From the IMG/VR virus record IMGVR_UViG_3300033145_003233, positions 124,001 through 188,000 of that record: DNA of 64,000 nt; one strand, given 5' to 3'. This document shows, in pieces, positions 145 to 20,260 of this stretch; the first letter of the stretch is position 1, and each line of letters begins with the position of its first letter. A program made the position numbers and the translations under genes. Under the pieces are notes generated by a model, which saw only the letters and a list, made by a program, of their open reading frames with translations, had not been told where the DNA came from and made no database searches.

Positions 145-627
145 TCACAATATTAATATTTCCCATCTATTATGAATCATACTATTTTCAACACATTTTG
201 AGCAAGCATATGCCTTAGGAAAGTTATAGTGATTTTCAATCATTTCCTCGATTAAAAAATACTTTTTACAACTATTACAGAGATCATGATCGGGAGAAAA
301 TTTTTCTGGGTTTAAACCAACACAGGTTTCACAATAATAACCATCATAATCAATCATTTCTTCAATTAAAAATCTCTCTATACAGCTATTACAATACTGG
401 TAATCTGAAGATGATTTTTCTGGCATTAAATGGACACAATCCGAACAATAATAATAACCGTCACAATGATCATAATATAAATATTCTTTATATATTATTG
501 TTCCTCAATTTGAGCAGTCTCCATAATCCTCTATCATAAAAGAGCATCTAAGACAACCATCATCTTTACAATGCCTAATATGTAGTATGTCATCTTCTTC
601 TGAAAGATATCTATCAGGTACTTCCAT
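145..627 (-). CDS. Cys-rich zinc-ribbon repeat protein with in-frame TGA at 505-507 (track ORF 145..426 is its 3' part)
   Basis: ATG 627 preceded by AGGA; frame continues past TGA into 145..426; three CxxC..CxxC repeats; C-terminus HNRWEILIL. Confidence 0.6.
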
Positions 628-952
628 AAGCTTTCATCCTATATATAGCATCATACGTTAATTGATCCTTTATATATTGTCCACAATCCTCCCACTTTGC
701 AACAGAAAAATTGTCAAAATTCTTAATATGATAAAAAGGGTCTACATCGCATTTCATCTCTCCACAAGCTATTTTTATACAAAAAGCATATCCCATGCTA
801 TTATCAAGCAACTCAAAATATATATAAAGAAGAGTTTTATCTTCAACCTGATATACCTCCCACTCTTGCCCTTCGATAAAGAAGCTTGTAAGATATTGAT
901 CTGAAGAAATAAGTTTCAATTCTTCTAAATGCTTTTTAACTAAATTTTCCAT
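614..952 (-). CDS. hypothetical protein
   Basis: 112 aa ORF coupled to neighbours. Confidence 0.7.
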   Translation of the reverse strand: MENLVKKHLEELKLISSDQYLTSFFIEGQEWEVYQVEDKTLLYIYFELLDNSMGYAFCIKIACGEMKCDVDPFYHIKNFDNFSVAKWEDCGQYIKDQLTYDAIYRMKAYGST

Positions 953-1730
953 TTATAAAAGGATTGTCCCTCCATATAACATGATTTTTATCAACTCTAT
1001 CTTTGAAATTTTTAGCCATCTTTTTGTAATCTCCTGGTAATATTTTTTTGGGAAGAATATATGTAATGGGATCACTCACAAAATGGGACCAGACATATTT
1101 GAAATTATCTTTATCTATTTGTTGCAAAAAAGATTCTTTCCATATCTTAGAAAAATATTTATTACAACTAATTCTATCATAATGACCATGATATTTGTTC
1201 ACAAATCCTATTTTATCAACATGTAAGGTATACATGTAAAAAGCATAAAAAAAAGTTAGCATGTGACAAGTTTCTGTCCACCACCATGAAACACGGTCAA
1301 AATTAGTATATACCGGGAAGCACACTTTAAAAGCATCAGAATGAAAAGCTAATAAAATAGTGGTTTGATGTTCTATTTTATTAATAAAGTTATAGTAAAC
1401 AGTTCCAATAGCAGGTTGGTACTCTAATAAAAAATCATCAAATATTTGCCATGGATTCTTTCCCTCATCTTCAGGATATTTATCTTTTCTAATACGTAAT
1501 TCAAGGTCATTCTCCAAACAAACATAATATAAATATTTCTTAGGAACTATCTCTGCTAATTTATTTTTACCTTCCCAGCATGTGCTATTAGGAAAAAATA
1601 TACTATTTTTATACTCTACTGGCTTCTTCCACGATAAAATATATACGTCCCTTCCCATCTCTTCTAATGTTTTAACATATTTAGGGATATAGTCTGAAGT
1701 CTGAACTAGATATGCTATTTCTTTAGCCAT
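936..1730 (-). CDS. GT-A fold (GT2-like) glycosyltransferase paralog 12
   Basis: GKNKL helix, DxD position degenerate (LEND), WRDNPFIN end. Confidence 0.65.
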   Translation of the reverse strand: MAKEIAYLVQTSDYIPKYVKTLEEMGRDVYILSWKKPVEYKNSIFFPNSTCWEGKNKLAEIVPKKYLYYVCLENDLELRIRKDKYPEDEGKNPWQIFDDFLLEYQPAIGTVYYNFINKIEHQTTILLAFHSDAFKVCFPVYTNFDRVSWWWTETCHMLTFFYAFYMYTLHVDKIGFVNKYHGHYDRISCNKYFSKIWKESFLQQIDKDNFKYVWSHFVSDPITYILPKKILPGDYKKMAKNFKDRVDKNHVIWRDNPFINGKFS

Positions 1731-2532
1731 TTATAAAAGGGTTATTCTTCCAAATATTATGATCTTTTTTTACTCTTTTTTTGAAATCCTCTGCTAATTC
1801 CAAATATTCTCCAGGATAAGGTTTTTTATATTTAATACCAGTAGAGGATCTACCATTCCTACATTTAAATCCTTCATCTATTTTTTTCTTATCTTCTTCA
1901 TATAATAAAGAAGTTTTATAGAACTTATCCCAGAAATATCTTCTACGATATTTAACTCTTCCACCTCTATGAAGCCCATTCTCCCAACAGATATCAAAAA
2001 AGCTAAGAATATATTTTTCAAAAGCTAGTCTAAAAGTAACCCAATTTATTTGTTCAGTCCAATCCATATTAATTATATCTAGACGATAGTACATGGGGTA
2101 ACATATTTTCATTGCGTCTCTATGAAAAGCCATACAACCAGTGTCTGGCATCCATGTTGTTTCTATTTCTCCCTTTTTTATTTTCTTTTTGTTAGAACAA
2201 TTAGGAAAACTAGGAGAACCAATAGCTGGTTCATATTCTAATAATAAATTCTCGAATTTCTCCAACGCATTAAGATGAGACAAAGATGGATCTCTCATAA
2301 ATACCTCTCCATCCTCATCCATAAATAAATAATATTTATATTTTCTAGAGACAATCTCCGCTAACTTATTTTTGCCTTCTCCATAGGTACATGGAAAGAA
2401 TATACTATTCTTATATTTTACTGGTTTTTTATAAGATAAGAGATATACATCTCTTCCCATTTTATCCAGTATTTCCATATACTTAGGAAGATAATCTGGA
2501 GTATGAATTAAATATACTATTTCTTTATTCAT
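1723..2532 (-). CDS. GT-A fold glycosyltransferase paralog 11
   Basis: GKNKL, YYLFMDED, EYEPAIG. Confidence 0.7.
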   Translation of the reverse strand: MNKEIVYLIHTPDYLPKYMEILDKMGRDVYLLSYKKPVKYKNSIFFPCTYGEGKNKLAEIVSRKYKYYLFMDEDGEVFMRDPSLSHLNALEKFENLLLEYEPAIGSPSFPNCSNKKKIKKGEIETTWMPDTGCMAFHRDAMKICYPMYYRLDIINMDWTEQINWVTFRLAFEKYILSFFDICWENGLHRGGRVKYRRRYFWDKFYKTSLLYEEDKKKIDEGFKCRNGRSSTGIKYKKPYPGEYLELAEDFKKRVKKDHNIWKNNPFING

Positions 2533-3289
2533 TTATAAAGCGATTTTTCCAAATAACGTGTTCTTTGTCTATCCTATTTTTAAAATTGTCTGACATTTCT
2601 TGATATTTTCCTGGACAAGACATTTTAGAAGAAGGCCTATAATGATGAACCATAAAATTAAAATTATCAATATCTTTTTTCTCTAAAAGAAATCTCTTCC
2701 ATATTTTTTTAAAATATCTATTAAGAGGACGTCTTGGATATTCCCCATCACGCTTATTTATAAACATTAATTTATCACATTGTAATATATACGGTTTAAA
2801 AGCATATGTAATAGTCATTAAATATGAGATACAACTCCAAAACCGAGAAACTTTTTCAAAACCTGTATATGCTGGGAACGATATCTCCATCGCATCACTA
2901 TGAATAGCAAATATAATTGGATCATACACTTCTCTATTAACGCCGTATTTAGAAGAAACTGTTCCTATAGCTGGCGTATTATCTAATAAAAATTCCTCAA
3001 ATATCTCCCAAGGATTTTTATTAATATCTTTAGGGTATTTTTCTTTCTTAATAAATAATCCTAGATCATCATCTAACATGACATAATATAAATACTTTTT
3101 AGGAACTATCTCTGCTAATTTATTCCTACCTTCCCATAGAGTGCTATCGGGAAAAAATATGTTATTCTTGTGAGCTAACGGCTCCTTCCAAGAATGTATA
3201 TAAACATCACTCTCCATATCCTCTAGTACTTTAACATAGTCAGGGATATAATCTGGAGTTTGAACTAAATATACAATTTCTTTACTCAT
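2525..3289 (-). CDS. GT-A fold glycosyltransferase paralog 10
   Basis: GRNKL, YYVMLDDD. Confidence 0.72.
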   Translation of the reverse strand: MSKEIVYLVQTPDYIPDYVKVLEDMESDVYIHSWKEPLAHKNNIFFPDSTLWEGRNKLAEIVPKKYLYYVMLDDDLGLFIKKEKYPKDINKNPWEIFEEFLLDNTPAIGTVSSKYGVNREVYDPIIFAIHSDAMEISFPAYTGFEKVSRFWSCISYLMTITYAFKPYILQCDKLMFINKRDGEYPRRPLNRYFKKIWKRFLLEKKDIDNFNFMVHHYRPSSKMSCPGKYQEMSDNFKNRIDKEHVIWKNRFINE

Positions 3290-4127
3290 TTAATAAAGGA
3301 TGATCCTTCCATATAATATGATTCTTATTTATTCTATTCTTAAAATCCTCTACCATTTCTTTATATTTCCCAGGATAAGGCTTTTTATAGCGACCGTCCA
3401 GGGAATGAACCCAGAAAGGGACTCCTATCAATCTGGCTCTTTCCTTATCTTTTTCATATAACAAAGAAGATTTATATAGTTTATGGAAAAACTGCCTAGG
3501 TTTCCTTTTGGTATATTTTCCTGTCCACCTATGCAATTTATTCTGTAATATTATTTTATTACATTGCAAGACACAAGATTTAAAAGCAAGAGCCACATGT
3601 TCCAAATACAACATTGTAGTCCACCACCAACCAGTCTCGTCAAAACCCGTATATAATGGAGAGAATAATTTTAGAGCATCTTTATGAATAGCAGATATAA
3701 TAGGATCATGTATTTTAATAGTATTAGCATCTTTAGTGTCGTCCACATATAGCTCTATAATTTCTTGCTCTTCAAATATTGGCCAAATATAAATAGCCGT
3801 TCCTATAGCCGGTTCATACTCTAATAAAAAATCTTCAAATATCTTCCAAGGATTCTTGCCGACTTCTTCTGGATATCTTTCATCTCTAATATGTAATTCC
3901 ACATCTTCATCTAAAAATACATAATATAAATACTCTTTAGGGACCATTTCTGCCTGCTTATTTCTACCTTCCCAAACAGTGCTATCCGGCAAAAAGATAT
4001 TATTCTTATGTTCTAATGGCTTTTTCCACGAAAGTATATATACATCTCTTCCCATGTCCTCTATGATTTTAACAAAATCAGGGATATAGTCTGGAGTCTG
4101 AACTAAATATGCTATATCTTTATTCAT
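3282..4127 (-). CDS. GT-A fold glycosyltransferase paralog 9
   Basis: GRNKQ, YYVFLDED. Confidence 0.72.
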   Translation of the reverse strand: MNKDIAYLVQTPDYIPDFVKIIEDMGRDVYILSWKKPLEHKNNIFLPDSTVWEGRNKQAEMVPKEYLYYVFLDEDVELHIRDERYPEEVGKNPWKIFEDFLLEYEPAIGTAIYIWPIFEEQEIIELYVDDTKDANTIKIHDPIISAIHKDALKLFSPLYTGFDETGWWWTTMLYLEHVALAFKSCVLQCNKIILQNKLHRWTGKYTKRKPRQFFHKLYKSSLLYEKDKERARLIGVPFWVHSLDGRYKKPYPGKYKEMVEDFKNRINKNHIIWKDHPLLNE

Positions 4128-4899
4128 TGATAAAAGGATTATCTTTCCAAAAAATATGATTTTTATTTACTCTTTTTTTAAAATCTTCTGCCATTTCTTT
4201 GTATCCATTGGGGCAAATTTTATTATAATATCTCGGAATAATAAAAATGCTATGAACAAGAGAAAATATATAATCTATCGTATTTCTATCTTCTTCTCTT
4301 AATAAAGCATTTTTAAATAATTTACATAAAAATCTAAACTTACCTTTGCGAGGATATTCTCTATGATATTTATTTATCGTTAATAATTCATCACACGATA
4401 ATATGTATGGCTCAAAAGCAAGTATTGTAATAATTAGATGAAAAATAGTAGCCCAAAGCCAGGAAGTTTGATCAAAATCTGTGTACACAGGAAAACAAAT
4501 ATCAATAGTGTCTTTATGCATGCCCATAATAATAGTATCATAGAATTTTTTTACTTTCTTGTCGTGATCGCGAAAAAAAACTGCACCTATAGCAGGTTTA
4601 TATTCCAACAAAAAGTTATCAAATATCTCCCAAGGATTCTTGTTTGTATTCTCGTCCTTGATTCTTAACTCTAAATCATCCTCTGTAAATACGCAATATA
4701 AATACTTCTTTGGAACTATTTCTGCCAATTTATTCCTGCCCGTCCAGCATGTGCCGTTAGGAAAAAATATACTATTTTTATGCTCTACTGGCTTCTCCCA
4801 CGATAAAATATATACGTCCCTTCCCATCTCTTCTAAAGTTCTAACATAATCAGGGATATAGTCTGGTGTTTGAATTAAATATGCTATTTCTTTATTCAT
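4120..4899 (-). CDS. GT-A fold glycosyltransferase paralog 8
   Basis: GRNKL, YCVFTEDD. Confidence 0.68.
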   Translation of the reverse strand: MNKEIAYLIQTPDYIPDYVRTLEEMGRDVYILSWEKPVEHKNSIFFPNGTCWTGRNKLAEIVPKKYLYCVFTEDDLELRIKDENTNKNPWEIFDNFLLEYKPAIGAVFFRDHDKKVKKFYDTIIMGMHKDTIDICFPVYTDFDQTSWLWATIFHLIITILAFEPYILSCDELLTINKYHREYPRKGKFRFLCKLFKNALLREEDRNTIDYIFSLVHSIFIIPRYYNKICPNGYKEMAEDFKKRVNKNHIFWKDNPFINE

Positions 4900-5716
4900 T
4901 TATAAAAGGATGATCTTTCCAAATAACATGATTTTTATCAATTCTATTTTTAAAGTCTTCAGCCATTTTTTTATACTTGCCAGGATAAGGTTTTTCATAT
5001 TCTCCGGCAGGTTCTCGATTAACCCATAACACATAAGCATTATCTTTATCCTCTTGACATAACAAAGATTTTTTACATATATCATACAGAAGCTTATTAG
5101 ATCTGATATGCTGAGATGTTTCTCCTCTGTGAAATTTATTTAGTAATAACAATTTATTACATTGCAATAACGATGATTTTGAAATTGCCGCCATAAAGAG
5201 CAGATGACTAGTACATGTCCAAAACCAAGAAGAATCATCAAATCCAGTATACATTGGAAAACATATGTTCATAATATCTTTATGAATAGCCATTATGATT
5301 ACCTCGAATTCTTTTAAGGTATTTGTTTCTTCATCACTTAAATATGTCAACATAGGGCTATTAGATGTCCCCCTGCCGCAATAAGCTGTCCCTATGGCAG
5401 GCTCATATTCCAATAAGAAATCATCAAATATTTTCCATGGATTCTTTCCCTCATCTTCAGGATATCTCTCTTCCCTAACCAATAAATTTACATCATCATC
5501 TAAAAACACATAATACAAATAGTCCTTTGGAACTATCCCTGCTAATTTATTCCTGCCTGTCGCAAAAGTGCTATTAGGAAAGAAAATGCTATTCTCATGC
5601 TTCACTGGTTCTTTATAAGAAAGTATATATACATCTCTTCCCATATCCTCTAACACTTTAACATAATCAGGGATATAATCAGAAGTCTGGACTAAATATA
5701 CTATTTTTTTATTCAT
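4892..5716 (-). CDS. GT-A fold glycosyltransferase paralog 7
   Basis: GRNKL, YYVFLDDD. Confidence 0.72.
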   Translation of the reverse strand: MNKKIVYLVQTSDYIPDYVKVLEDMGRDVYILSYKEPVKHENSIFFPNSTFATGRNKLAGIVPKDYLYYVFLDDDVNLLVREERYPEDEGKNPWKIFDDFLLEYEPAIGTAYCGRGTSNSPMLTYLSDEETNTLKEFEVIIMAIHKDIMNICFPMYTGFDDSSWFWTCTSHLLFMAAISKSSLLQCNKLLLLNKFHRGETSQHIRSNKLLYDICKKSLLCQEDKDNAYVLWVNREPAGEYEKPYPGKYKKMAEDFKNRIDKNHVIWKDHPFINE

Positions 5717-6590
5717 CTTTTAATAAAGGATGATCTTTCCAAAAAATATGTTTCTTATTTATTCTGTTCTTAAAATTATTAACTATTTTTTTATATTTTC
5801 CTGGATATGGTTTTTTATATACTCCATCACAATACCCTTTTTCGAAAAAACGCCCTTCAGGTCCATATCTAATATTTCCATTATAATCGGGAGGAGGGGG
5901 ATCATTTTGATAAGGGTCTAAAAAGGCACGATCTTGGTCTTCTTTATATAATAAAGATTTCTTATAGATGGCAGAATAAAAACGGGGGGCACGATGCCTG
6001 TCACAATTTATTCTACGACCCTTATTTATAAATGTTAAATTATTATCTTGTAATACACAAGATTGAAATGCTATTTTATGTGTAATTCTGGCAATTGCCT
6101 CTGTCCACCATATCGAAATGTGGTCAAAACCAGTAAACATGGGAAAACATATGTCAAGAGCATCTATATGATATGCCAACATAGCACATTCAGTGCGATA
6201 TGTGGTTTCAGTTTGTTCTTCTATTTCTCTTATCTTTTTATATTTGAGTCTTCCCTCATAATAAACGCATCCTATAGCTGGCTCATACTTTAATAAAAAG
6301 TCATCAAATGTCTTCCACGGTTTTTTTTTAATTAATAGTTTATTTCTTACATATAATTCAACATCATCATCTATCTGAACATAATATAAGTATTTTTTAG
6401 GAACTATTTCTATTAATTTATTTCTGCCAGTAGACCATGTGCTATCAGGAAAAAATATATTGTTTTTATGCTCTACTGGTTTTTTATAAGAAAGGATATA
6501 AACATCTCTTCCCATATCCTCTAATACTTTAACATAATCAGGAATAGTATCTGTTGTTTGAGCTAAATATACTATGTCTTTATCCATCAT
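5709..6590 (-). CDS. GT-A fold glycosyltransferase paralog 6
   Basis: GRNKL, YYVQIDDD. Confidence 0.72.
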   Translation of the reverse strand: MMDKDIVYLAQTTDTIPDYVKVLEDMGRDVYILSYKKPVEHKNNIFFPDSTWSTGRNKLIEIVPKKYLYYVQIDDDVELYVRNKLLIKKKPWKTFDDFLLKYEPAIGCVYYEGRLKYKKIREIEEQTETTYRTECAMLAYHIDALDICFPMFTGFDHISIWWTEAIARITHKIAFQSCVLQDNNLTFINKGRRINCDRHRAPRFYSAIYKKSLLYKEDQDRAFLDPYQNDPPPPDYNGNIRYGPEGRFFEKGYCDGVYKKPYPGKYKKIVNNFKNRINKKHIFWKDHPLLKDE

Positions 6591-7404
6591 TCAATAAAGG
6601 ATGATCTTTCCATATAACATGTTTTTTATTTACTTTATTCTTAAATCCTTTTACCATCTTTTTGTATTTTCCTAGATAAGGTTTTTTATATTCTTTCTCT
6701 GAAAAACGATTCTCCCATGATACATACGCTTCTTTTTTGTCTGCCTCCAATAATAAAGAATCTTGAAACATCTTATATAAGAAGTTAAAATCTACTATTC
6801 TTTTATATTTTTTATGATGCCTGTGAAACCTATTATTTATTATGAGCCTATTACATTGTAATATATAAGGATAAAAAGCTAACATTCTAGTAAGTAAAAG
6901 GGTCCCACCTGTCCAATACCATGTAACCTCATTAAATCCTCCAAATATGGGAAAACATAAATCTAAAGTATCTTTATGAAGGCCAGAAATAATACACTCA
7001 TATTCTTTAACTGTGTTAATTTCCTTGTTATCGTCTAAATATGAGACAAACCCACCATAAGAGCTATTATCACAAGAAACCGTTCCGATAGCGGGCAGAT
7101 GCTCTAATAAAAAATTCTCATATACTTTCCAAGGATGTTTATCATTAGGATATTTATCTTTCCTAATTAATAACTCTAAATCATCATCTAAAAACACATA
7201 ATATAAATATTTCTTAGGAACTATCTCTGCCAATTTATTCCTGCCTTCTGACCATGCACAATCAAACAAGAAGGTGTTATTCTTATGGTTAACTGGTTTT
7301 TTATAAGAAAGAATATAAACGTCTCTACCCATATCTTCTAATACCTGAACGTAATCGGGAATGTAGTCGGGTGTTTGAACTAAATATGCTATTTCTTTAC
7401 TCAT
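6580..7404 (-). CDS. GT-A fold glycosyltransferase paralog 5
   Basis: GRNKL, YYVFLDDD. Confidence 0.72.
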   Translation of the reverse strand: MSKEIAYLVQTPDYIPDYVQVLEDMGRDVYILSYKKPVNHKNNTFLFDCAWSEGRNKLAEIVPKKYLYYVFLDDDLELLIRKDKYPNDKHPWKVYENFLLEHLPAIGTVSCDNSSYGGFVSYLDDNKEINTVKEYECIISGLHKDTLDLCFPIFGGFNEVTWYWTGGTLLLTRMLAFYPYILQCNRLIINNRFHRHHKKYKRIVDFNFLYKMFQDSLLLEADKKEAYVSWENRFSEKEYKKPYLGKYKKMVKGFKNKVNKKHVIWKDHPLLNDG

Positions 7405-8221
7405 TAATAAAAGGATGTCCTCTCCATAAAATGTGCGACTTGTCTATTCTATTTATAAAATTCTTCGCCATTTTTTTATATCTACCATTGCTAGGTTTTT
7501 TATATTCTTTATGAAGACAAGAATTACGAAAATGGAATGCATATGCTAATTTCTCCTTGTCCCCATCCTCCAATAAAGAGTCCTGATATATCTCAATAAG
7601 ATCATGATAATTAATTTCTCTAGGATATTCCCTATGCAATCTATCATTAAAGGTTAATTTATTACATTGTAAGACAAATGGAGATAAAAAAAACATACTA
7701 GTTGTTGAATATATCCATCCAGGCCACCACCAAGAAAAACTATCATAATGAGAACAAATGGGATAACAAACATCTATGACATCTTTATGAGCAGCAGAGA
7801 TAATAGAATTATGGAACCTGACAACATTTATCTCTTTAGTATCATCTATATACGTTGCTGCTCCGCTATTTGAAGCCTTCCCACAATAAACACTCCCAAT
7901 AGCAGGCATATGCTTTAATAAAAAATCTTCAAATATCTCCCATGGATTTTTGTCTATTTCTTCTGGATATCTCTCCTCTCTTACAAATAATTCTACATCA
8001 TCATCTAACAGAACATAATATAGATATTTCTTCGGGACTATCTCTACTAATTTATTTCTACCTTCGGCCCATGTACTATTAGGAAAAAATATATTGTTCT
8101 TGTGATCTATAGGTTTTTTATAAGACAATAAATAAACATCTCTTCCCATATCCTCTAATGTTTGAACGTAATCTGGAATATAATCTGGTGTCTGAACTAA
8201 ATATACTATTTCTTTACTCAT
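7397..8221 (-). CDS. GT-A fold glycosyltransferase paralog 4
   Basis: GRNKL, YYVLLDDD. Confidence 0.72.
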   Translation of the reverse strand: MSKEIVYLVQTPDYIPDYVQTLEDMGRDVYLLSYKKPIDHKNNIFFPNSTWAEGRNKLVEIVPKKYLYYVLLDDDVELFVREERYPEEIDKNPWEIFEDFLLKHMPAIGSVYCGKASNSGAATYIDDTKEINVVRFHNSIISAAHKDVIDVCYPICSHYDSFSWWWPGWIYSTTSMFFLSPFVLQCNKLTFNDRLHREYPREINYHDLIEIYQDSLLEDGDKEKLAYAFHFRNSCLHKEYKKPSNGRYKKMAKNFINRIDKSHILWRGHPFINE

Positions 8222-9044
8222 TTATAAAGGGATGGTCCTTCCAAAGAATATGATCCTTTTTTACCTTATTTTTAAATTCTTCCATTAAATTTTTATATTT
8301 GCCAGGATAAGGTTTTTTGTATTCTCCTGGAATAGGGTCCTTTTTATAAACAAATTCTAAATACACCTCATCCTTATCTTTTTTATTTATTATAGAAGAA
8401 CCAAAAAACCAGAACAAGGTGACTTTAGGAAAAACCCCATATTCAGGCCTGTGAAGATTATTTTTTAATATCAACTTATTACATTGCAATATAGAATTAG
8501 AAGCAAAAGCTATTTTAGTAGTTAAGATATAACAACATGCAGGCCATACCATACTAAATCTATCAAAACCTAAAAATAGAGGAAAGCATAAATCTAAAAC
8601 ATCCTTGTGAATAGCAGATAATATAGGCTCATGTTCTTTAAGAGTATTTATTTCTTTGTCGTCATCCAAATAATGTTTAAACTTGGCTTCAGTTAGCTCG
8701 TTAGAACAATAAACCGTTCCTATAGCAGGTTCGTATTTTATGAGAAAATCCCCAAATATTTTCCAAGGATTTTTATCAACATCTTCTGGATATTTTTTCT
8801 CTCTTACAAATAATTCCACATCATCGTCTATCATAACATAATATAGATATTTCTTAGGGACTATCTCTGCTAATTTATTTCTGCCTGAAGACCATGTGCT
8901 ATCAGGAAAGAATATACTATTCTTATATTCTACAGGCTTTTTCCATGAGAGGATATAAACATCTCCTCCCGCAGCCTCTAACATTTTAACATAGTTGGGA
9001 ATATAATCTGGAGTTTGAACTAAATATGCTATTTCTTTATTCAT
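8214..9044 (-). CDS. GT-A fold glycosyltransferase paralog 3
   Basis: GRNKL, YYVMIDDD. Confidence 0.72.
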   Translation of the reverse strand: MNKEIAYLVQTPDYIPNYVKMLEAAGGDVYILSWKKPVEYKNSIFFPDSTWSSGRNKLAEIVPKKYLYYVMIDDDVELFVREKKYPEDVDKNPWKIFGDFLIKYEPAIGTVYCSNELTEAKFKHYLDDDKEINTLKEHEPILSAIHKDVLDLCFPLFLGFDRFSMVWPACCYILTTKIAFASNSILQCNKLILKNNLHRPEYGVFPKVTLFWFFGSSIINKKDKDEVYLEFVYKKDPIPGEYKKPYPGKYKNLMEEFKNKVKKDHILWKDHPFINE

Positions 9045-9876
9045 TAATAAAAGGATGGTCCTTCCACAAAAAATGATCTTTATCTACTTCGTTTTTGAAT
9101 CTATCTATCATCTTTTTATATTTGTATGGATAAGGTTTCTCATAGTCATCTGGAACAGAATCATTTTCATAACTAAACTCTAAATATGTTTCTTTTTTAT
9201 CTCCTTTATTCAATAGAGAATTAGCAAACATCCAAAAAAGGATATTAGTATCTAACCCTCCTCTATGTCTCTCCCTGTGGAGGCTATTCTCTAATGCCAA
9301 TTTATTACATTGTAATATAGATGCATGAATACCAAAAGCTATCTTTGTAATTAATATGTATAAACTGGCCGTCCAGCACCATGGTTTATGGGCCTCATCG
9401 AACTTTAAACAGACAGGGAAACATAAATCTAAAGCTTCTCTATGGACAGCAGAAATAATAGGCTCATGCTCCTTAATAGTATTGATCTTTTTACTATCAT
9501 CTAAATAATGTCTAAAACGAGCTTTGGGGTGAGTGGAATTACAATAGACTCCCCCTATAGCTGGCTCATGCTTCAATAAGAAATCATCAAATATCTTCCA
9601 AGGATTACTGCTCTCGTTAGGATACCTTTCTTTTCTTATATGTAATTTTATATCATCATCTAGAAAGACATAATATAAATATTTCTTAGGGACTATCTCT
9701 GCCAATTTATTCCTACCAGAATAACATGTACTATCAGGAAAGAATATATTATTCTTATGAGCTATTGGCTTTTTATAAGACAATAAATAAACGTCTCTTT
9801 CCATATCTTCTAATGTTTGAACAAAATCTGGGATATAATCGGAAGTTTGAACTAAATATGCAATGTTATTATTCAT
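9037..9876 (-). CDS. GT-A fold glycosyltransferase paralog 2
   Basis: GRNKL, YYVFLDDD. Confidence 0.72.
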   Translation of the reverse strand: MNNNIAYLVQTSDYIPDFVQTLEDMERDVYLLSYKKPIAHKNNIFFPDSTCYSGRNKLAEIVPKKYLYYVFLDDDIKLHIRKERYPNESSNPWKIFDDFLLKHEPAIGGVYCNSTHPKARFRHYLDDSKKINTIKEHEPIISAVHREALDLCFPVCLKFDEAHKPWCWTASLYILITKIAFGIHASILQCNKLALENSLHRERHRGGLDTNILFWMFANSLLNKGDKKETYLEFSYENDSVPDDYEKPYPYKYKKMIDRFKNEVDKDHFLWKDHPFINE

Positions 9877-10708
9877 TGATAAAAGGATGATTTCTCCAAA
9901 GAATATGTTTCTTATTCACTCTCGTTTTAAAGTCTTCTACCATTTCTTTATATTTGTACGGATAAGGTCTTTTATATTCTTTATCGGGAGAATAGAGCCA
10001 AGAAGGAGAAGACATTAATGTTATTATATCTTTATCTGTTTCTTTTAAAAAAGAAGATTTATATAACTCATGAAAAAACTTTCCAGGATATAATAAATAT
10101 TTTCCAGTATGTCTTAATCTATCTGTGTTTTTTAATACTATTTTATTACATTGTAAAATACAGGACTTAAAAGCAAGTATAATATTTCTGGTGTATATGC
10201 CAGAAGCCCAATATATAGAAATTTTGTCAAAACCAGTATATATAGGAAAACATAGTTTCATAGCATCTTTATGGACAGCAGATAATATGGGTTCATGTTC
10301 CTTAACGGTCATTATGTCCATAGCATCATCTAAATACTTTGGTACAAGATTACCTTTTAATACAGGGTAGAAACAGAAACAGCTTCCTATGGCCGGTTTA
10401 TGCTCTAATAAGAAGTTCTCAAATATTTTCCAAGGATTTTTATTAGCATCTTCTGGATAATTTTTTATCTGGATGTTTAAATCTACATCGTCATCTAAAA
10501 ATACATAATATAGATATTTCTTAGGGACTATTTCAGCTAATTTATTTCTTCCTTCTGTCCATGTGCTATCTGGAAAAAATATATTGTTTTTGTGTTTTAC
10601 CGGCTTCTTCCATGAGAGAATATAAACTTCTCTTCCGATGTCCTCGATCATTTGAACATGATCGGGGATATAATCGGGGGCCTGAATTAAATATACTATC
10701 TCCTCCAT
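9869..10708 (-). CDS. GT-A fold glycosyltransferase paralog 1
   Basis: GRNKL, YYVFLDDD; first gene of array, GGTGGGG RBS. Confidence 0.72.
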   Translation of the reverse strand: MEEIVYLIQAPDYIPDHVQMIEDIGREVYILSWKKPVKHKNNIFFPDSTWTEGRNKLAEIVPKKYLYYVFLDDDVDLNIQIKNYPEDANKNPWKIFENFLLEHKPAIGSCFCFYPVLKGNLVPKYLDDAMDIMTVKEHEPILSAVHKDAMKLCFPIYTGFDKISIYWASGIYTRNIILAFKSCILQCNKIVLKNTDRLRHTGKYLLYPGKFFHELYKSSFLKETDKDIITLMSSPSWLYSPDKEYKRPYPYKYKEMVEDFKTRVNKKHILWRNHPFINE

Positions 10709-10841
10709 ACCCCACCTATTCTTTTAAACTAATAGCTGAATAGTATCTTGAATCGCAGGAAATAAGGAACATAAAGTAGTTGTGTCTAAATTAGTGCTAT
10801 AAATAAGATTGTTGATCTTTATAGCAATAAATGTAAAAAAA

Positions 10842-14797: not shown

Positions 14798-15067
14798 TTA
14801 TAAATCCATAATCTCAAATCTATTATCTATGGAATCTGATACCTCTTCTATTATTTTTGCAAACTCTTTTATTTCTCTTTCTGACCAATTATAGCCAATC
14901 TCTTCCATCTTATAAATTCTAAACATTTCATGCCCATTTGCGCTCTTTTCTCGAGTAAAATCTTTTATTGTAAATATGTTTTTATGTTTTTTTAATGCTT
15001 CTCGTATGTCTGTATTATAATTATCATGAGCTATTATCTCTACCTTATCTCCTATTTTATATTTCAT
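14798..15067 (-). CDS. MKYKxGD (SH3/KOW-like) protein, tag NRFEIMDL
   Basis: paralog of 22933-24105 genes; tag. Confidence 0.8.
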   Translation of the reverse strand: MKYKIGDKVEIIAHDNYNTDIREALKKHKNIFTIKDFTREKSANGHEMFRIYKMEEIGYNWSEREIKEFAKIIEEVSDSIDNRFEIMDL

Positions 15068-15252
15068 ATATCTAAAATCTCAAATCTACTATATATTGGC
15101 ACAGGTATCGGGAGAGGCTTTGGAACCTGTGGATAACTATATTCGTGCTCACCAGGACATGTCTCACAATAATAGATCACAGCATAATCATCAGGACAAG
15201 TAACAATAGTTTTTAATTTTCCACAACAAGAACAAATTCTTAACACAGCCAT
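15064..15252 (-). CDS. CxxC protein, tag SRFEILDI
   Basis: CSCC/CETC; tag. Confidence 0.8.
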   Translation of the reverse strand: MAVLRICSCCGKLKTIVTCPDDYAVIYYCETCPGEHEYSYPQVPKPLPIPVPIYSRFEILDI

Positions 15253-15254
15253 GA

Positions 15255-15467
15255 TTACAAATCCAGAATATCGAACCTACTAACCACTGATTCTCCTTTT
15301 TCTCCTCCACGTCTTACCCACCAATAACAAGCTGTACAGTAATATTCATAAGAAGATCCCCAAGCAGGATAGACATAATGATATTCTCCAAATGGTTTGC
15401 CCATTAAAGATTTCTCACAACGAAAACATTTTACCGGGTCATCCATACGATAAGTCCAATATCTCAA
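15255..15467 (-). CDS. CxxC protein, tag SRFDILDL
   Basis: CFRC/CTAC; tag. Confidence 0.8.
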   Translation of the reverse strand: MRYWTYRMDDPVKCFRCEKSLMGKPFGEYHYVYPAWGSSYEYYCTACYWWVRRGGEKGESVVSRFDILDL

Positions 15468-15810
15468 ACCGACTTATTATAGGATCAAAAACTTCTTCTT
15501 CTGGTTCTTCTGTTTCTTCTTTATAATTTAATATAAACTGTTTTAATGCACTCTTATTGCAAGAATCATTTGAATCGATATTAAGGTCGAACAAACCCAT
15601 TCTATTTTTCATCAACTTAACTTTTTTATTGCCGCTATTATCAATATACCTATGTGCAATAACGCTCGCCGTGTGTCTCTCTCTCATCCCTAAAACACCG
15701 AATAGAGGACTTTTTAACCTTACTTCCTCCGTAAAAATTTTATTCTTGGCCATATCATCGTCATCAAGAATTATAATTTTTCCATATGTTACATGGTCTA
15801 AAGTTATCAT
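15439..15810 (-). CDS. hypothetical protein, tag SRFEILDLSYG
   Basis: start trimmed to MITLD; KLMKNRMG resembles a DnaB-type C-terminal motif (weak). Confidence 0.7.
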   Translation of the reverse strand: MITLDHVTYGKIIILDDDDMAKNKIFTEEVRLKSPLFGVLGMRERHTASVIAHRYIDNSGNKKVKLMKNRMGLFDLNIDSNDSCNKSALKQFILNYKEETEEPEEEVFDPIISRFEILDLSYG

Positions 15811-16004
15811 ATTCCCTCCCGCTTTATTGCTAACATAATTAATGTTGTTTGAGTACAATTAAACCATCTTTGCACAAAATCTAATGCCAAGTCGTCCTCT
15901 TTATATTTATCTAAAAAATAGAACAATACTTTCTTGTCATAATCTGTAAATTCTTGAGAAGTTCTCTTTTTCTGATCTCCTAATTGTGTTCTCAAGGAAG
16001 TCAT
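15807..16004 (-). CDS. hypothetical protein (untagged)
   Basis: coupled ORF. Confidence 0.65.
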   Translation of the reverse strand: MTSLRTQLGDQKKRTSQEFTDYDKKVLFYFLDKYKEDDLALDFVQRWFNCTQTTLIMLAIKREGI

Positions 16005-16210
16005 AGGTCTAATATCTCGAATCTACTAAATATTGGATCAAAAATTGGTTCCTCATCGAAAATATACACAGAAGGCGAAGAAGATCTTTTTTCGGTACAG
16101 CTATTACAATAAAAATTTTGTGCATTAACCGTATGATTAACAATAGTAAGAGGACCTCCTCCAGGGATAATTATTTTACTACAACTATTACACATATATC
16201 CAGTTGCCAT
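16001..16210 (-). CDS. CxxC protein, tag SRFEILDL
   Basis: start trimmed to MATGY; CNSC x2; tag. Confidence 0.78.
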   Translation of the reverse strand: MATGYMCNSCSKIIIPGGGPLTIVNHTVNAQNFYCNSCTEKRSSSPSVYIFDEEPIFDPIFSRFEILDL

Positions 16211-16211
16211 A

Positions 16212-16388
16212 TTATAAATCCAAAATCTCAAATCTATCATATATAGGAGTTGGAACTAAAACTGCCATACTTCTTTTACATTTTTTCTGAATAACACAGT
16301 CTGTGCAATGAAAATTAGCATCAAAGAAAACAATCTCTTCATTATCTTCTATCTTTTTGCGACAAGCATGACACTTCATTTCTACCAT
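16212..16388 (-). CDS. 58 aa CxxC protein missing from track, tag DRFEILDL
   Basis: translated by hand: MVEMKCHACRKK...CTDC...PIYDRFEILDL*. Confidence 0.8.
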   Translation of the reverse strand: MVEMKCHACRKKIEDNEEIVFFDANFHCTDCVIQKKCKRSMAVLVPTPIYDRFEILDL

Positions 16389-16657
16389 TACAAATCCATC
16401 ATCTCAAATCTATCTATATTTTCTCTTTTCTCTACCTCCTTTTTTAAGGGCCTTCTTACTATATGATCTCCCTTCTGTCTTCCCCAACCAACCACTATCT
16501 CCCATCCATCTGCAAGAAGATAATATATAGATTCCATATTTTGCCCCATATCACCATATCTGCCATAGTCATACTTGTCAAAAAATCCATATTCATAATT
16601 ATCTATTTCCATTCTTTTCGTAATAACATATTTATCTTTATATTTATCTCTAGCCAT
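16388..16657 (-). CDS. LADGWE-family protein, tag DRFEMMDL
   Basis: paralog of 18490 and 18696; tag. Confidence 0.8.
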   Translation of the reverse strand: MARDKYKDKYVITKRMEIDNYEYGFFDKYDYGRYGDMGQNMESIYYLLADGWEIVVGWGRQKGDHIVRRPLKKEVEKRENIDRFEMMDL

Positions 16658-16911
16658 TACAAATCTAATATTTCAAATCTGCTCCCTATCGGAATAAAGA
16701 AAGATTTATTTTCCAAAATCTCAAAATAGCTACTTGATTTAACAGAATCTCCTTCAAAATAAGAGAGAAAACAAATTTCCATTATTTCTGGAATCTCTAG
16801 AATTTCTTCTCCATTAAAAATAAGACGATAACAAGCAGTATGGGTTCCGGAGCAAGCAAATCCAGCACAAGCGAAAGAACGTTGAAAACGATCTTTATTT
16901 CTAACTCTCAT
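16657..16911 (-). CDS. hypothetical protein, tag SRFEILDL
   Basis: tag. Confidence 0.75.
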   Translation of the reverse strand: MRVRNKDRFQRSFACAGFACSGTHTACYRLIFNGEEILEIPEIMEICFLSYFEGDSVKSSSYFEILENKSFFIPIGSRFEILDL

Positions 16912-17348
16912 AAATCCATCATCCCAAAGCGACCGTCCTCAGCATTTATTGGTTTGGGGGTTTTTCTTTCAGGAGGACGAGGATCTAATTCATATCCAGC
17001 ACGTTCTGACTCTCCTATTCTTTTTATTTTTTTCCATTGTCTTCTAGATATTTGAGAAATACTTTTTTTCATACAAGATTGACAAGCACACGTCCATCCC
17101 CAAAAAGAAACTTGTAGAACTACACTGCTTGTAGTCTTGTTCCCAAATTTATCCTTCGTTTTAATTGGGGCCAAGCAAAAACTATGTTTTTCTCTGACAT
17201 CCATACCATGCTCTACATCATAACCAATACTCTGCCATGAATATTTTCCCTCTTCTTTGGTGCTTGTTGTAATCGTTTCTTTTTTCCCGCAAAAATCACA
17301 AATATATGTGCTTGTATGTTTATGACTTTCTTCTTTTTTTACTCCCAT
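16908..17348 (-). CDS. CxxC protein, tag GRFGMMDL
   Basis: CDFC/CQSC; divergent tag. Confidence 0.78.
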   Translation of the reverse strand: MGVKKEESHKHTSTYICDFCGKKETITTSTKEEGKYSWQSIGYDVEHGMDVREKHSFCLAPIKTKDKFGNKTTSSVVLQVSFWGWTCACQSCMKKSISQISRRQWKKIKRIGESERAGYELDPRPPERKTPKPINAEDGRFGMMDL

Positions 17349-17350
17349 AA

Positions 17351-17545
17351 TTATTTCTTCTTCAATTTTTTCAGAGCTTTTTTCGAAGCCACATCAATTC
17401 TTTTAATAATAAAAAATGGTCCCATCTCAGGATATTCAGAAACTATTTCTTCTTCAAAAGGACATTCAGAACAACATACAACTCTGTCTGATGCCAAATT
17501 CTTCTTACATAGTTTGACATGCTTTTTTAGCTTTTTCTTATCCAC
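17351..17545 (-). CDS. basic Cys-containing hypothetical protein
   Basis: coupled ORF. Confidence 0.65.
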   Translation of the reverse strand: MDKKKLKKHVKLCKKNLASDRVVCCSECPFEEEIVSEYPEMGPFFIIKRIDVASKKALKKLKKK

Positions 17546-17754
17546 TATCTCTTTTCCAATTTTGGAGTTTTAAATGATTCTTCATGACACTGTGTTAAAA
17601 TAGTTTTTAAAAGCCTACCAGAACCTTTGCACTTTTTACACGTTTCAGTCCAATGATCATAATGACCATTATGATAATCTGTTAATTCACTTTGATGAAT
17701 TACCCCTTCTCCTTCACATTTGGTGCATAAAATTATTTGCTTTTCTTTATCCAT
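17545..17754 (-). CDS. DnaJ-type zinc-finger-like protein
   Basis: CTKCEGEG and CKKCKGSG (CxxCxGxG x2). Confidence 0.7.
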   Translation of the reverse strand: MDKEKQIILCTKCEGEGVIHQSELTDYHNGHYDHWTETCKKCKGSGRLLKTILTQCHEESFKTPKLEKR

Positions 17755-17959
17755 ATTTATGATCCTCCTTTACTTCTTGAATGCTCCCCACATGATCTCC
17801 ATGGAAATGGACAACACTAAATATGTTCATTAAAGGGTATTTCATAATCAACCCATTCTTGAGTTGAAAACAACAAAACCCACCCTTTGTGTAGATTGCC
17901 TCAACATCTTTTCTCACTAATGGCGTAGACGCTGAGTGAAAAATTATTTCAACTTCCAT
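17747..17959 (-). CDS. hypothetical protein
   Basis: coupled ORF with GGGGG RBS. Confidence 0.7.
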   Translation of the reverse strand: MEVEIIFHSASTPLVRKDVEAIYTKGGFCCFQLKNGLIMKYPLMNIFSVVHFHGDHVGSIQEVKEDHKYG

Positions 17960-17981
17960 TATTTACCCCCCACAATAATTT

Positions 17982-18245
17982 CTACAAATCTATGTCTCTA
18001 TCCCATTGCTGTCCAGGATGAACCCTTGTATATCTCCTGCTAGCACAGCCAGGAGTACTTAAAACATTCTTCCAAGACCAAAGTGCAAAGATCCCCAACA
18101 ACACAGCAGATAGGAGATTCCAAAAAGAAACATAAAACCACAAACAATATAAAGCCCTCAAAAAGAAAGCGCTAAATATTAAGGCCACGACACCTCTCAA
18201 GCTTTTAAACTTAGAGGCATTTCTTTTAATTAGAAACCAACTCAT
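17982..18245 (-). CDS. hypothetical membrane protein
   Basis: two hydrophobic helices. Confidence 0.7.
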   Translation of the reverse strand: MSWFLIKRNASKFKSLRGVVALIFSAFFLRALYCLWFYVSFWNLLSAVLLGIFALWSWKNVLSTPGCASRRYTRVHPGQQWDRDIDL

Positions 18246-18259
18246 CTTTTTAACTCCTT

Positions 18260-18433
18260 CTAAATTTCAAATTCATCTGCTAAATCTAACCACTTAACAA
18301 AAGCTTTAGCAATTTTAACACATCTTCCACATTTTTCAGCTTCTATATCACATAATTCCAGATGACACTTAGAACAAAGCCCATCTGGAGACTCCAACTC
18401 AAGCTCATTTTCACACATTCTACAATTTTTCAT
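18260..18433 (-). CDS. 57 aa Cys-rich protein missing from track
   Basis: hand translation MKNCRMC...CSKC...CGRC; GGGAGGG RBS. Confidence 0.65.
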   Translation of the reverse strand: MKNCRMCENELELESPDGLCSKCHLELCDIEAEKCGRCVKIAKAFVKWLDLADEFEI

Positions 18434-18489
18434 TCTTCCCTCCCATTCCTATATTATACCCGTTTTACTTTCACTTTCTAACTATTTTT

Positions 18490-18696
18490 TTAAACTTGTC
18501 TTCTTACGATGTGGTCATACCCGTATTTTCCCATACAAGCAACAATTTCCCACCCATCTGCAAGAAGGTAGTACCTACTATCTATCAGGCAATTATCACA
18601 TTCATCTTCGTTCTCATCATCTGAAAAATAACCATATTCATACCCTTTGATTATTTTTTTATCAATTATTCTATATTTCTCTTTTTTTTTAGCCAT
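18490..18696 (-). CDS. LADGWE-family protein (untagged paralog)
   Basis: aligns by eye with 16388..16657 but stops before linker and tag. Confidence 0.75.
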   Translation of the reverse strand: MAKKKEKYRIIDKKIIKGYEYGYFSDDENEDECDNCLIDSRYYLLADGWEIVACMGKYGYDHIVRRQV

Positions 18697-18947
18697 TATA
18701 TATCCATCATCTCAAATCTGCTAACTTGTGTCTTATCTTGTCTTATGAGAGGTCTTTTTAAATAAAAATCATCCTTATCTCCAGCAGAAGTGTTAGTAAT
18801 AACTTCCCAACCATCTGCAACAGCACAAAATAATGCTGGTGGTTTATCATTATTAGCAAGAAAACTGTAAAGAACACTATATTCATAGTCATCTATTACG
18901 ATAAAATCTGCCAAAACATATTTTGATTTATTTTTATCTTTATACAT
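18696..18947 (-). CDS. LADGWE-family protein, tag SRFEMMDI
   Basis: VADGWEV; tag. Confidence 0.78.
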   Translation of the reverse strand: MYKDKNKSKYVLADFIVIDDYEYSVLYSFLANNDKPPALFCAVADGWEVITNTSAGDKDDFYLKRPLIRQDKTQVSRFEMMDI

Positions 18948-19262
18948 CTATTTTGTTTCATTTTTACATTCTTTTAAACATATTTTTCCACAATGTCCTT
19001 TATCACCACTCCATAATATATCTAAAGCATTTTGAGCTTCTATCTCTATCATTTGTAAATGACATCTTGAACAAGGACATGGGTCTTTTGTGCAATCTCC
19101 AAAATGAACATCTGCCCCCTCTAAAAACTGTTGGTATCCGAAATAAGAGGTACAAGCTTTTAAATTATCTATTTCAGACAATTTGCAAAACATAATAAAT
19201 TTTAAGTACTCATACATCTCTTCTCTTGTAAATTTTTTAGTCTTCATTATCATCCCTCTCAA
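18948..19262 (-). CDS. Cys-rich hypothetical protein
   Basis: DVHFGDCTKDPCPCSRC. Confidence 0.7.
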   Translation of the reverse strand: MRGMIMKTKKFTREEMYEYLKFIMFCKLSEIDNLKACTSYFGYQQFLEGADVHFGDCTKDPCPCSRCHLQMIEIEAQNALDILWSGDKGHCGKICLKECKNETK

Positions 19263-19461
19263 TTTCTTCTATTTCTATTATCTTTCCTATTGAGAAATGC
19301 CCCATAGCACAATAACAAGTGGTAGGATCACTTTCTGGAAAATAAAATGCCGCACAATTTTCCCTGCATGTCGCAGTTCTATTATAACAACAAATATCTT
19401 TGTTCTCAGCAACTCCATATACGCCGCCATTGTCTCTATCTATCATTACTCTTCTTGCCAT
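19237..19461 (-). CDS. Cys-rich hypothetical protein
   Basis: CCYNRTATCRENCAAF. Confidence 0.7.
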   Translation of the reverse strand: MARRVMIDRDNGGVYGVAENKDICCYNRTATCRENCAAFYFPESDPTTCYCAMGHFSIGKIIEIEEIERDDNED

Positions 19462-19485
19462 TTTTATTTACTCCTGACTTTGTTT

Positions 19486-19731
19486 TCATATATCCATTAT
19501 CTCAAATCTACTAATCTTTTCTATTTTATCTTGTTCTTCATGAAATATTTTACTTATTGCTTTTTCTATCTCTTTCTTAGATTCTCTATATACAGTAGTA
19601 TCATCAGAGTGCATGAAACTAATCTGAATATGAGCCTCATAATCTTGTATCTCAGCTATATTATTAATATTAATCCAGATCTTATTCTCTCCCCAGTCTG
19701 TCAATTCTATAAAAAATCCCATTCTTCTCAT
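19486..19731 (-). CDS. hypothetical protein, tag SRFEIMDI
   Basis: tag. Confidence 0.78.
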   Translation of the reverse strand: MRRMGFFIELTDWGENKIWININNIAEIQDYEAHIQISFMHSDDTTVYRESKKEIEKAISKIFHEEQDKIEKISRFEIMDI

Positions 19732-20042: not shown

Positions 20043-20260
20043 AAATCCATAATGTCAAATCTATCAATTATTGGTTTAGCATTTTTTTCTGATATATCAT
20101 GTTCTTTCCATAAACCACCTATCAATGCTGCAAGCTCATTATTAATTTTTCTTATCTTTTCTTCGGAGTCGGCATAATTGCAACTAAGAGAAGGATCATT
20201 GTTTATAGCATGTATCATGCTAATATGATTATTTAGTAATTTGCGTTCATCTGGTGTCAT
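20039..20260 (-). CDS. hypothetical protein, tag DRFDIMDL
   Basis: tag. Confidence 0.78.
   Translation of the reverse strand: MTPDERKLLNNHISMIHAINNDPSLSCNYADSEEKIRKINNELAALIGGLWKEHDISEKNAKPIIDRFDIMDL

Follow-up and report, generated by a model that had tools for sequence, protein, structure and literature searches.

Glycosyltransferases (GTs) of phages have so far been encountered as single genes or small sets that act on DNA or on host surface glycans, and seldom on virion proteins. In mycobacteriophage virion O-glycosylation, and in the glycan clusters of chloroviruses and mimiviruses, virus-borne soluble GTs work together with virus-borne sugar-nucleotide synthesis and without lipid-carrier export, an organization also found in the phage described below. 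The mycobacteriophage precedent is that of Freeman et al. 2023, as cited in PMC12619734, and GTs rank among the commonest structural clusters of huge phages (bioRxiv 10.1101/2025.02.27.640493). Here, a tandem array of twelve related genes was analyzed in a window of 64,000 nucleotides, namely bases 124,001-188,000 of IMG/VR virus record IMGVR_UViG_3300033145_003233. The record measures 547,943 bp, is CheckV-complete and is a tailed megaphage. The array occupies window positions 936-10708 on the minus strand and is read, with moderate confidence, as a co-expressed panel of soluble GT-A enzymes with diversified acceptor sites that probably make phage-specified glycoconjugates. The gene class is ordinary but its expansion is not: a phage GT is a known kind of enzyme, and the novelty lies in the family, in its copy number and in how the genes are arranged.

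Array layout and predicted fold

Twelve open reading frames (ORFs) of 254-293 aa lie head to tail and are joined by 11 junctions, comprising ten 8-nt overlaps (ATGAATAA six times, ATGAGTAA three times and ATGGCTAA once) and a single 11-nt overlap (ATGATGGATAA). At each junction, the start codon of the next gene sits inside the last codons of the preceding one. Seven genes end in FINE*, and the remainder in LLNE, LLNDG, LLKDE, FING or FINGKFS. Gene number, head-to-tail order, sizes and overlaps had been given with exact coordinates in the initial annotation, which had also correctly noticed that the FINE* end supplies the next start. A frame of 270 codons would stay open by chance with P~2e-11 at the base composition of the array, and the paralogs score E 1e-111 to 1e-135 against their hidden Markov model. 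Moreover, an independent Joint Genome Institute (JGI) contig, L045, carries the genes G10-G12 at 99.96% identity; since the end of the array recurs in a separate assembly, an assembly artefact can be dismissed. JGI 3300033388 likewise contains this array. The genome contains exactly 14 members of this GT-A-like family, which is by far its largest paralog family. The two remote copies, X1 and X2, form a further 8-nt-overlapping pair outside the window.

Translation signals differ between the first gene and those that follow. None of the internal genes has a close, properly spaced Shine-Dalgarno (SD) element: for four of the 11, only an SD-like GGA-rich stretch is located ~14 nt upstream, and the other seven lack any core motif. 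Genome-wide, a core SD precedes 43% of genes versus 14% of random sites, and approximately half of all 8-nt overlaps in the genome fall within the GT-A-like family. All 11 overlaps place a stop codon across or against the next start without an independent ribosome-binding site, as expected within an operon. The stop/start overlaps (ATGARTAA), together with the absence of internal SD sites, point to coupled and roughly equimolar translation from one transcript, and the arrangement is consistent with translation of the internal genes by coupled reinitiation at the overlaps. A scan for promoters and terminators returned counts at the level of shuffled sequence.

AlphaFold models of a typical copy (G01; pLDDT 79.6, pTM 0.84) and of the most degenerate copy (G12; pLDDT 90.6, pTM 0.90) display the same order of strands and helices. 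The predicted fold is a single Rossmann-like alpha/beta/alpha domain with a central mixed sheet, as in the GT-A superfamily, and D72-x-D74 comes after strand 67-71, where the DxD motif of GT-A enzymes lies. Foldseek against the PDB returned RmlT, SpsA, AvpGT, STIV A197, TarP, TarS, GlcAT-P and GalNAc-T2, and an unbiased scan of 48,161 PDB representatives retrieved GT-A folds only, for both models. AFDB clusters were matched at E 1e-15 to 1e-11 with template modelling (TM) scores of up to 0.69; these belong to eukaryotes and giant viruses and either bear the name hexosyltransferase or GT92 or have an FkbM methyltransferase as fusion partner. BFVD and Swiss-Prot models likewise gave generic GT-A matches. 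In the ESM Atlas, look-alike clusters at TM 0.70-0.79, mostly phage-derived but also bacterial, comprised DUF5672-like proteins, DUF7796, DUF707 and a sialyltransferase fusion. The top matches are GT-A throughout, whether from Foldseek, the PDB-wide aligner, AFDB, BFVD or the ESM Atlas, and they support the GT-A fold proposed in the initial annotation. The paralogs are predicted with good confidence to be nucleotide-sugar-dependent transferases. Neither a signal peptide nor a transmembrane-like segment is present in the paralogs, the pI of which ranges from 5.6 to 9.1, with a C-terminal tail that is mostly basic.

At the sequence level, no Pfam family matched at E<=1 in the 10 copies scanned, NCBIfam gave only noise for the paralogs, and no PDB chain matched the family profile. 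The only hit was weak, to PHROG phrog_842 (beta-glucosyl-HMC-alpha-glucosyltransferase, ba-gt), in three of the 12 array copies with a best E of 0.0057. A scan of the genome with PF00535 identified eight other genes, the canonical GT2 genes of this phage, and none in the array. Profile-profile alignment (hhalign) with these GT2 genes placed the conserved blocks in register without significance (E 0.033 at a probability of 1.5%; probabilities 0.3-1.5% overall). The family is therefore assigned to the GT-A fold and not to GT2, and the label "GT2-like" of the initial annotation finds no support at the sequence level, given the lack of a Pfam match and a profile probability of 1.5%. DUF7796 is structurally the nearest Atlas cluster (TM 0.77-0.78); its profile (PF25072) has no match in the phage genome at E<=10, and one distant relative matches it at 2.6e-4.

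Pairwise identity among the paralogs is 39-62% and is distributed unevenly. The conserved ends had been put at the first 80 and last 25 aa; conservation of both ends holds, and the blocks are longer, at ~110 aa and ~40 aa. The middle (alignment columns 113-268) is as divergent as had been described, with many indels, yet it contains conserved islands at H146, P155, D161, W167, L-Q-x-N 185-188, N194 and D225. The wider family shares the signature Y-L-x-Q ... G-R-N ... D-x-D ... D139 ... H146 ... D161 ... Q-x-N ... N194. Among 50 aligned members, R54, N55, D72, D74, P105 and P155 are invariant, and Y6, L7, Q9, G53, D139, H146, D161, Q186, N188 and N194 nearly so. The GRN...DxD pattern first noticed in the array is therein an invariant family signature. 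From its position 87 residues past the DxD, D161 is the putative counterpart of the GT2 catalytic base.

All 14 copies keep G53, N55, D74 and H146, and D74 is also retained in 50 of 50 family members. Elsewhere in the site, substitutions occur: D72 is retained in 11 copies and is E in three (G08, G12, X1), R54 is replaced by K in G11, G12 and X1, and D139 by N in G04 and T in G12, while G05 and G10 have N and E, respectively, at D161. Changes at Q186 and N188 occur in G08, G10, G11, G12, X1 and X2. G12 carries the most changes at family-invariant sites (K54, E72, N73, T139, H186, D188). The largest differences between copies are located in the loop after strand 5 (113-135, 0-24 residues, low pLDDT) and in segment 195-250. 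The half of GT-A enzymes that holds such regions normally forms the acceptor site, and by this established knowledge of the fold the loop and the segment would fall in the acceptor half. Of the proposed conserved donor site and variable acceptor site, the variable middle stands, while the donor site is substituted in eight of the 14 copies; because these substitutions fall at family-invariant positions, the model of a single fixed donor site and variable acceptor sites is no more than approximately correct. To judge from these residues, differences in donor or chemistry are probable for some copies, and inactivity is possible for one or two.

Distribution and evolution of the family

An exhaustive profile search over 1.84 billion representatives retrieved 797 clusters at E<=1e-3, of which 356 reach E<=1e-10; the family is widespread, although uncharacterised and without a Pfam model. 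Members include a type-II membrane-anchored coral protein (P0013), proteins of giant-virus metagenome-assembled genomes (MAGs), and bacterial proteins, especially of Desulfobacterales but also of Acidobacteria, Flavobacteriia and cyanobacteria. Relatives are fused to FkbM, sulfotransferase, sialyltransferase or TPR domains. One relative lies amid galactose-3-O-sulfotransferase-like, two GT2 and Nucleotid_trans genes; others directly follow a STELLO-type GT or adjoin GT8, GT2, PMT_2, FkbM methyltransferase or teichoic-acid glycerophosphotransferase (Glyphos_transf) genes. Judged by gene content, this neighbourhood supports a role in glycan chemistry.

What sets the array apart is the number of copies. 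Family-level patterns retrieved twenty distant IMG/VR loci, many of them giant-virus MAGs; all have a single copy except one giant-virus MAG, which has two. Among 79 bacterial loci, 75 have one copy and four have two, and the maximum among the ~100 related viral and bacterial loci is two. Against 50,697 deposited phage records, neither megablast with the array nor tblastn with paralog G01 produced a match, and paralog-specific patterns found no close relative in IMG/VR. With no homolog in those phage records and one or two copies at every other locus retrieved, the array is indeed unusual for a phage, as had been remarked at the outset.

In the phylogenetic tree, the 14 copies form one clade, with the single-copy metagenomic proteins P0014 and P0015 as successive outgroups, which indicates a lineage-specific tandem expansion. 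Neighbouring genes are sisters (G02/G03, 97/95; G04/G05, 94/95), and a short-form clade unites G08, G10, G12, X1 and X2 (98/98), in which G12 is the partner of X1 and G10 that of X2. The sister relations of neighbours and the pairing of the remote copies imply local tandem duplication, with part of the distal end copied later to a second site.

Synonymous divergence is saturated and equal in all regions of the genes (pS 0.62, dS ~1.25). The N-terminal 112 codons have a dN/dS ratio (omega) of 0.16 and the C-terminal 40 codons one of 0.24, against 0.54 for the middle. Across pairs, omega of the middle region ranges from 0.23 to 0.95. For whole genes, omega in sister pairs is 0.19-0.33, the odd copies G11 and G12 included. 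No two copies share an exact nucleotide match longer than the maximum of 39 nt, and the single-copy relative P0014 has the same C-terminal tail, ending in NPFINA. Gene conversion was considered as a cause of the conserved ends and is ruled out by the equal, saturated pS, the 39-nt maximum match and the shared tail of P0014, which together indicate that the ends are held by selection at the protein level. Overlap requirements likewise do not explain them. By these rates, the copies are old and under purifying selection rather than homogenised, young or decaying. Neutral evolution, which the initial annotation had named as grounds for abandoning its reading, is not what is observed.

Proposed role and competing explanations

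The array is proposed to be an operon-like string of twelve soluble, cytoplasmic, nucleotide-sugar-dependent GT-A glycosyltransferases, each copy of which would probably transfer a sugar to a different acceptor position or to a different acceptor. The donors would probably be supplied by the sugar-nucleotide and glycan island of the phage itself. This island, outside the window, covers ~70 kb at 308-380 kb of the genome (loci L039-L042) and holds six GDP-mannose-dehydratase/epimerase-like, five GT-B, four GT2, two NeuB and two CMP-sugar cytidylyltransferase genes, in addition to several methyltransferases (two of them FkbM), E1/transketolase-like genes and two intein-containing genes. One of the six sugar dehydratase/epimerase genes encodes a genuine GDP-mannose 4,6-dehydratase with up to 78% identity to metagenomic homologs, which yielded no taxon for the host. 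Neither kind of initiating phosphoglycosyl transferase was found in the genome, nor was a Wzx-type flippase, and the positive controls worked. Without a lipid-carrier initiating transferase or a flippase, the glycans would most likely be built directly on phage-specified acceptors in the cytoplasm. The lack of both undecaprenyl phosphate machinery and a base-activating enzyme also favours direct cytoplasmic glycosylation of such acceptors. Virion proteins would be the foremost candidate, with precedents in mycobacteriophages and giant viruses; their assignment, or that of comparable phage-specified glycoconjugates, as the acceptors is tentative.

Several observations weigh against this proposal. 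The array is located ~180 kb away from the glycan island, amid tandem families of small ORFs, a position that fits a host-takeover region equally well, and a phage without lipid-carrier genes could still use those of its host. Eight of the 14 copies are substituted at family-invariant positions, and some are possibly inactive or changed in chemistry. Furthermore, a sequence-level link to characterised GTs is missing, as Pfam, NCBIfam and PDB profiles are empty and hhalign against GT2 is insignificant. If the products coat the virion, they would form a phage-made complex glycan coat; if the targets are host molecules, the array would represent a new kind of effector family. In addition, the array constitutes a natural series, with one donor scaffold and many acceptor sites, that should help to dissect acceptor specificity in a family also present, and unstudied, in corals, protists, giant viruses and many bacteria.

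A first alternative is considered unlikely: on the inner face of the membrane, the paralogs would glycosylate intermediates of host surface polymers (O-antigen, capsule or teichoic acid), masking receptors and blocking superinfection, and the many copies would correspond to many types of host glycan. Among the structural matches are TarP, a wall-teichoic-acid GT encoded by a prophage, as well as TarS, RmlT, heparosan synthase and WrtF, an O-antigen fucosyltransferase; cellular relatives are located in surface-polysaccharide clusters, and the mostly basic C-terminal tail is compatible with binding to an anionic membrane or polymer. However, the paralogs have neither a membrane anchor nor an amphipathic hydrophobic segment, and the large-scale synthesis of rare sugar nucleotides by this phage exceeds the needs of receptor masking. 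Seroconverting GTs are, moreover, typically single genes of temperate phages.

A second explanation is an effector panel in which each paralog would have its own glycosylation target in the host, either a protein or a small molecule (such as defence proteins, signalling nucleotides or translation factors), and the expansion would be a gene accordion in an arms race. The region is rich in tandem small-ORF families and lies near a poly(ADP-ribose) polymerase (PARP)-like gene, which is typical of host-takeover or counter-defence regions; the X1/X2 pair abuts a PAS sensor kinase gene, the expansion is lineage-specific, and the middle region evolves rapidly, with omega up to 0.95 in some pairs. Such a panel is nevertheless improbable: the relatives with informative context are all located in glycan-synthesis clusters and none in defence islands, and the duplicates are old, with saturated dS, not recent amplifications. 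A related formulation, in which the 14 paralogs are a target-recognition panel (for a host defence protein, a receptor precursor or a signalling molecule) and not the steps of one glycan pathway, is scarcely less improbable. In it, a conserved module for the sugar donor would be combined with diversified acceptor-binding loops, and every copy would glycosylate another host macromolecule. If true, no such battery of glycosylating effectors made up of many paralogs, expanded in accordion fashion during an arms race, would have been described from a phage before.

DNA hypermodification had been among the acceptors initially suggested, together with virion glycans and host receptors or defence proteins; it is the option disfavoured here, as neither a thymidylate-synthase-type hydroxymethylase nor TET/JBP was found. 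Under it, the paralogs would glycosylate hydroxymethylated or otherwise activated bases of phage DNA, possibly building oligosaccharides. DNA-modifying phage GT-A enzymes with R...DDD motifs do exist, and their genes normally adjoin a base-activating enzyme (Pyle et al., bioRxiv 10.1101/2023.12.21.572611). The weak PHROG ba-gt match (E 0.006 in three of 12 copies) points in this direction, as do structural hits in BFVD on TET-associated GTs (E 2e-6) and on ba-gt (E 6e-5), but structural matches to DNA GTs are no better than those to other GT-A enzymes, and no base-activating enzyme was recognised in the array flanks. The hydroxymethylase profile (PF00303) found nothing in the genome, with a control positive in 10 of 14 genomes, and Tet_JBP (PF12851) was not found either, though its control was silent. 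DNA as the acceptor is thus very unlikely.

It is hardly plausible that the paralogs are GT75-like pyranose/furanose mutases or self-glycosylating proteins instead of transferases to external acceptors. The highest-ranking structural matches are MtdL and rice UAM2, and no others span the whole chain; STELLO-type genes adjoin relatives, and two relatives have weak STELLO matches; the Z margin over ordinary GT-A transferases is nevertheless less than 1 unit, and there is no rationale for twelve diversified mutases. GT75 is defined by an autoglycosylated arginine ~50 residues past the DxD (MtdL Arg159, OsUAM1 Arg158; PMC9937993). Its position corresponds to the hypervariable loop 113-135, which is missing in five copies and has no conserved Arg, and the mutase reading is rejected for lack of this residue in the family. 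Equally remote is a decaying or non-catalytic array, the copies of which would be relics, or pseudoenzymes that serve only in structure or binding: despite substitutions at family-invariant active-site positions in eight of 14 copies (six in G12), all 14 frames are intact (each P~2e-11 by chance), whole-gene omega is 0.19-0.33 with G11 and G12 included, D74, H146, N55 and G53 are kept in 14 of 14, and the G12 model has a pLDDT of 90.6.

Genomic setting and comparison with known systems

PHROG matches in the genome include a portal, a large terminase and a tail fibre, and nearly all genes lie on the same strand across more than 400 kb. The closest deposited terminase is only 26% identical and derives from a 485 kb uncultured phage. 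The capsid profile of nucleocytoplasmic large DNA viruses (NCLDV) had no match in the genome, its positive control being silent as well. A giant-virus origin was rejected on the basis of the portal, terminase and tail-fibre matches, the single-strand gene bias, the 27 tRNA genes and the absence of an NCLDV capsid match. The array is located at the edge of a paralog-rich accessory region, and the small ORFs in its flanks belong to no recognisable family. The 112-aa ORF that overlaps its end is possibly a 13th cistron of the operon. At the remote site, X1 and X2 are directly downstream of a sensor histidine kinase gene, the end of which coincides exactly with the start of X1, and they may be co-transcribed with it. 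Elsewhere, the PARP-like protein has the domain layout of a eukaryote-type poly(ADP-ribose) polymerase, here encoded by a phage, and the related ORFs at the two ends of the linear record could stem from terminal repeats or from circular permutation of the assembly. Coordinates are listed in Table 1.

Table 1. Positions of the array genes and of other features of the window and the genome (window coordinates unless marked otherwise).
Feature	Position	Strand	Remarks
SD-like AGGTGGGGT	10709-10717	-	abuts the G01 start on the upstream side
G01	9869-10708	-	279 aa; first cistron; sole array gene with an SD-like element directly upstream
G02	9037-9876	-	279 aa; 8-nt overlap ATGAATAA with G01; sister of G03
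G03	8214-9044	-	276 aa; 8-nt overlap; sister of G02 (97/95)
G04	7397-8221	-	274 aa; 8-nt overlap ATGAGTAA; sister of G05; N at D139, D at N194
G05	6580-7404	-	274 aa; 8-nt overlap; N at the putative catalytic-base position D161
G06	5709-6590	-	293 aa; 11-nt overlap ATGATGGATAA; insertion of ~20 aa within the variable C-proximal region
G07	4892-5716	-	274 aa; 8-nt overlap
G08	4120-4899	-	259 aa; short form, loop 113-135 mostly deleted; E at D72; Q186/N188 altered
G09	3282-4127	-	281 aa; 8-nt overlap; query of the homolog search
G10	2525-3289	-	254 aa; short form; E at D161; groups with remote copy X2
G11	1723-2532	-	269 aa; most divergent (39-46% identity); K at R54; whole-gene dN/dS ~0.3
G12	936-1730	-	264 aa; short form; last cistron; sister of remote copy X1
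112-aa ORF	614-952	-	overlaps the G12 end by 17 nt; no recognisable family
Small-ORF tandem families	~14800-29100 (genome 138.8-153.1 kb)	-	~90-170 aa, 3-6 copies each; no recognised domains
Further small-ORF tandem families	genome 187.6-196.1 kb		same kind
LAGLIDADG_2 protein	44655-46058	-	467 aa; homing-endonuclease domain (E 1e-18); weak UPF0175 match; adjoins the PARP-like gene
PARP-like protein	46126-47430	-	434 aa; WGR, PARP regulatory and PARP catalytic domains (PF00644, E 1.8e-27)
tRNA cluster	47686-59550	-	27 tRNA genes, all on the coding strand; most amino acids covered
ORF resembling ribosome modulation factor	61838-62449	-	weak, sub-threshold likeness (PF04957, E 7e-5)
Glycoside hydrolase family 15-like ORF	L009:14266-15255 (genome ~122.3-123.3 kb)	+	PF00723, E 7e-11; strand opposite to the array, ~1.6 kb past its downstream end
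X1/X2	genome 278,856-280,404		remote pair of the GT-A-like family
PAS-HisKA-HATPase sensor histidine kinase	L010:8405-9547 (genome ~280.4-281.5 kb)	-	directly upstream of X1
End ORFs	genome 99-746 and 546363-547815	+	related to each other

Compared with GT2-type GT-A enzymes (SpsA, TarP/TarS, RmlT, WrtF and the polypeptide GalNAc-transferases), the array family has the same order of motifs, that is, an Arg-Asn helix and a hydrophobic strand 4 with D-x-D at its end, followed by a His and, ~87 residues past the DxD, by an Asp, and the paralogs have approximately the size of single-domain GT2 enzymes. Unlike in GT2, the base-binding Asp after strand 2 is replaced by Ser/Thr, an extra conserved basic C-terminal segment of ~40 aa is present, and no significant sequence or profile match exists (no Pfam family; hhalign probability 1.5%). 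The best full-length structural likeness is to GT75 (MtdL and plant UAM/RGP) and STELLO-type proteins. A DDD motif with an upstream Arg is shared with GT75, at a similar spacing (R54-D72 here versus R90-D109 in MtdL), and a metal-binding His is available; however, the paralogs lack the autoglycosylated Arg and the inserted core domain of MtdL, are ~100 residues shorter, and match none of the STELLO or RGP Pfam profiles. Some DNA GTs of phages (the T-even alpha/beta-gt and ba-gt, and the TET/5mYOX-associated enzymes) are GT-A with R...DDD, and three array copies have the weak PHROG ba-gt match, but no base-activating enzyme was found in the genome or beside the array.

The true homologs, with E down to 1e-42 and the full signature, are unnamed eukaryotic, giant-virus, bacterial and phage proteins (Stylophora LOC111330920; AFDB A0A1S3JTK0 and A0A6C0J651), structurally placed beside Pfam DUF7796, DUF5672 and DUF707. 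The nearest non-self relatives of the array are P0014 and P0015, at 34-39% identity. Elsewhere, genes of this family are single-copy, rarely two, and their products are often fused to a methyltransferase, sulfotransferase, TPR or sialyltransferase domain or, as in the coral protein, anchored in the membrane at the N-terminus, whereas 14 stand-alone soluble copies are found here. In the mycobacteriophage, chlorovirus and mimivirus systems the acceptors are virion proteins, which for the array are candidate acceptors. Those systems employ a few GTs from different families and have no coupled array of a dozen paralogs. Fourteen selected copies, together with a ~70 kb island that includes nonulosonic-acid genes, amount to an investment in glycosylation on the scale of giant eukaryotic viruses.

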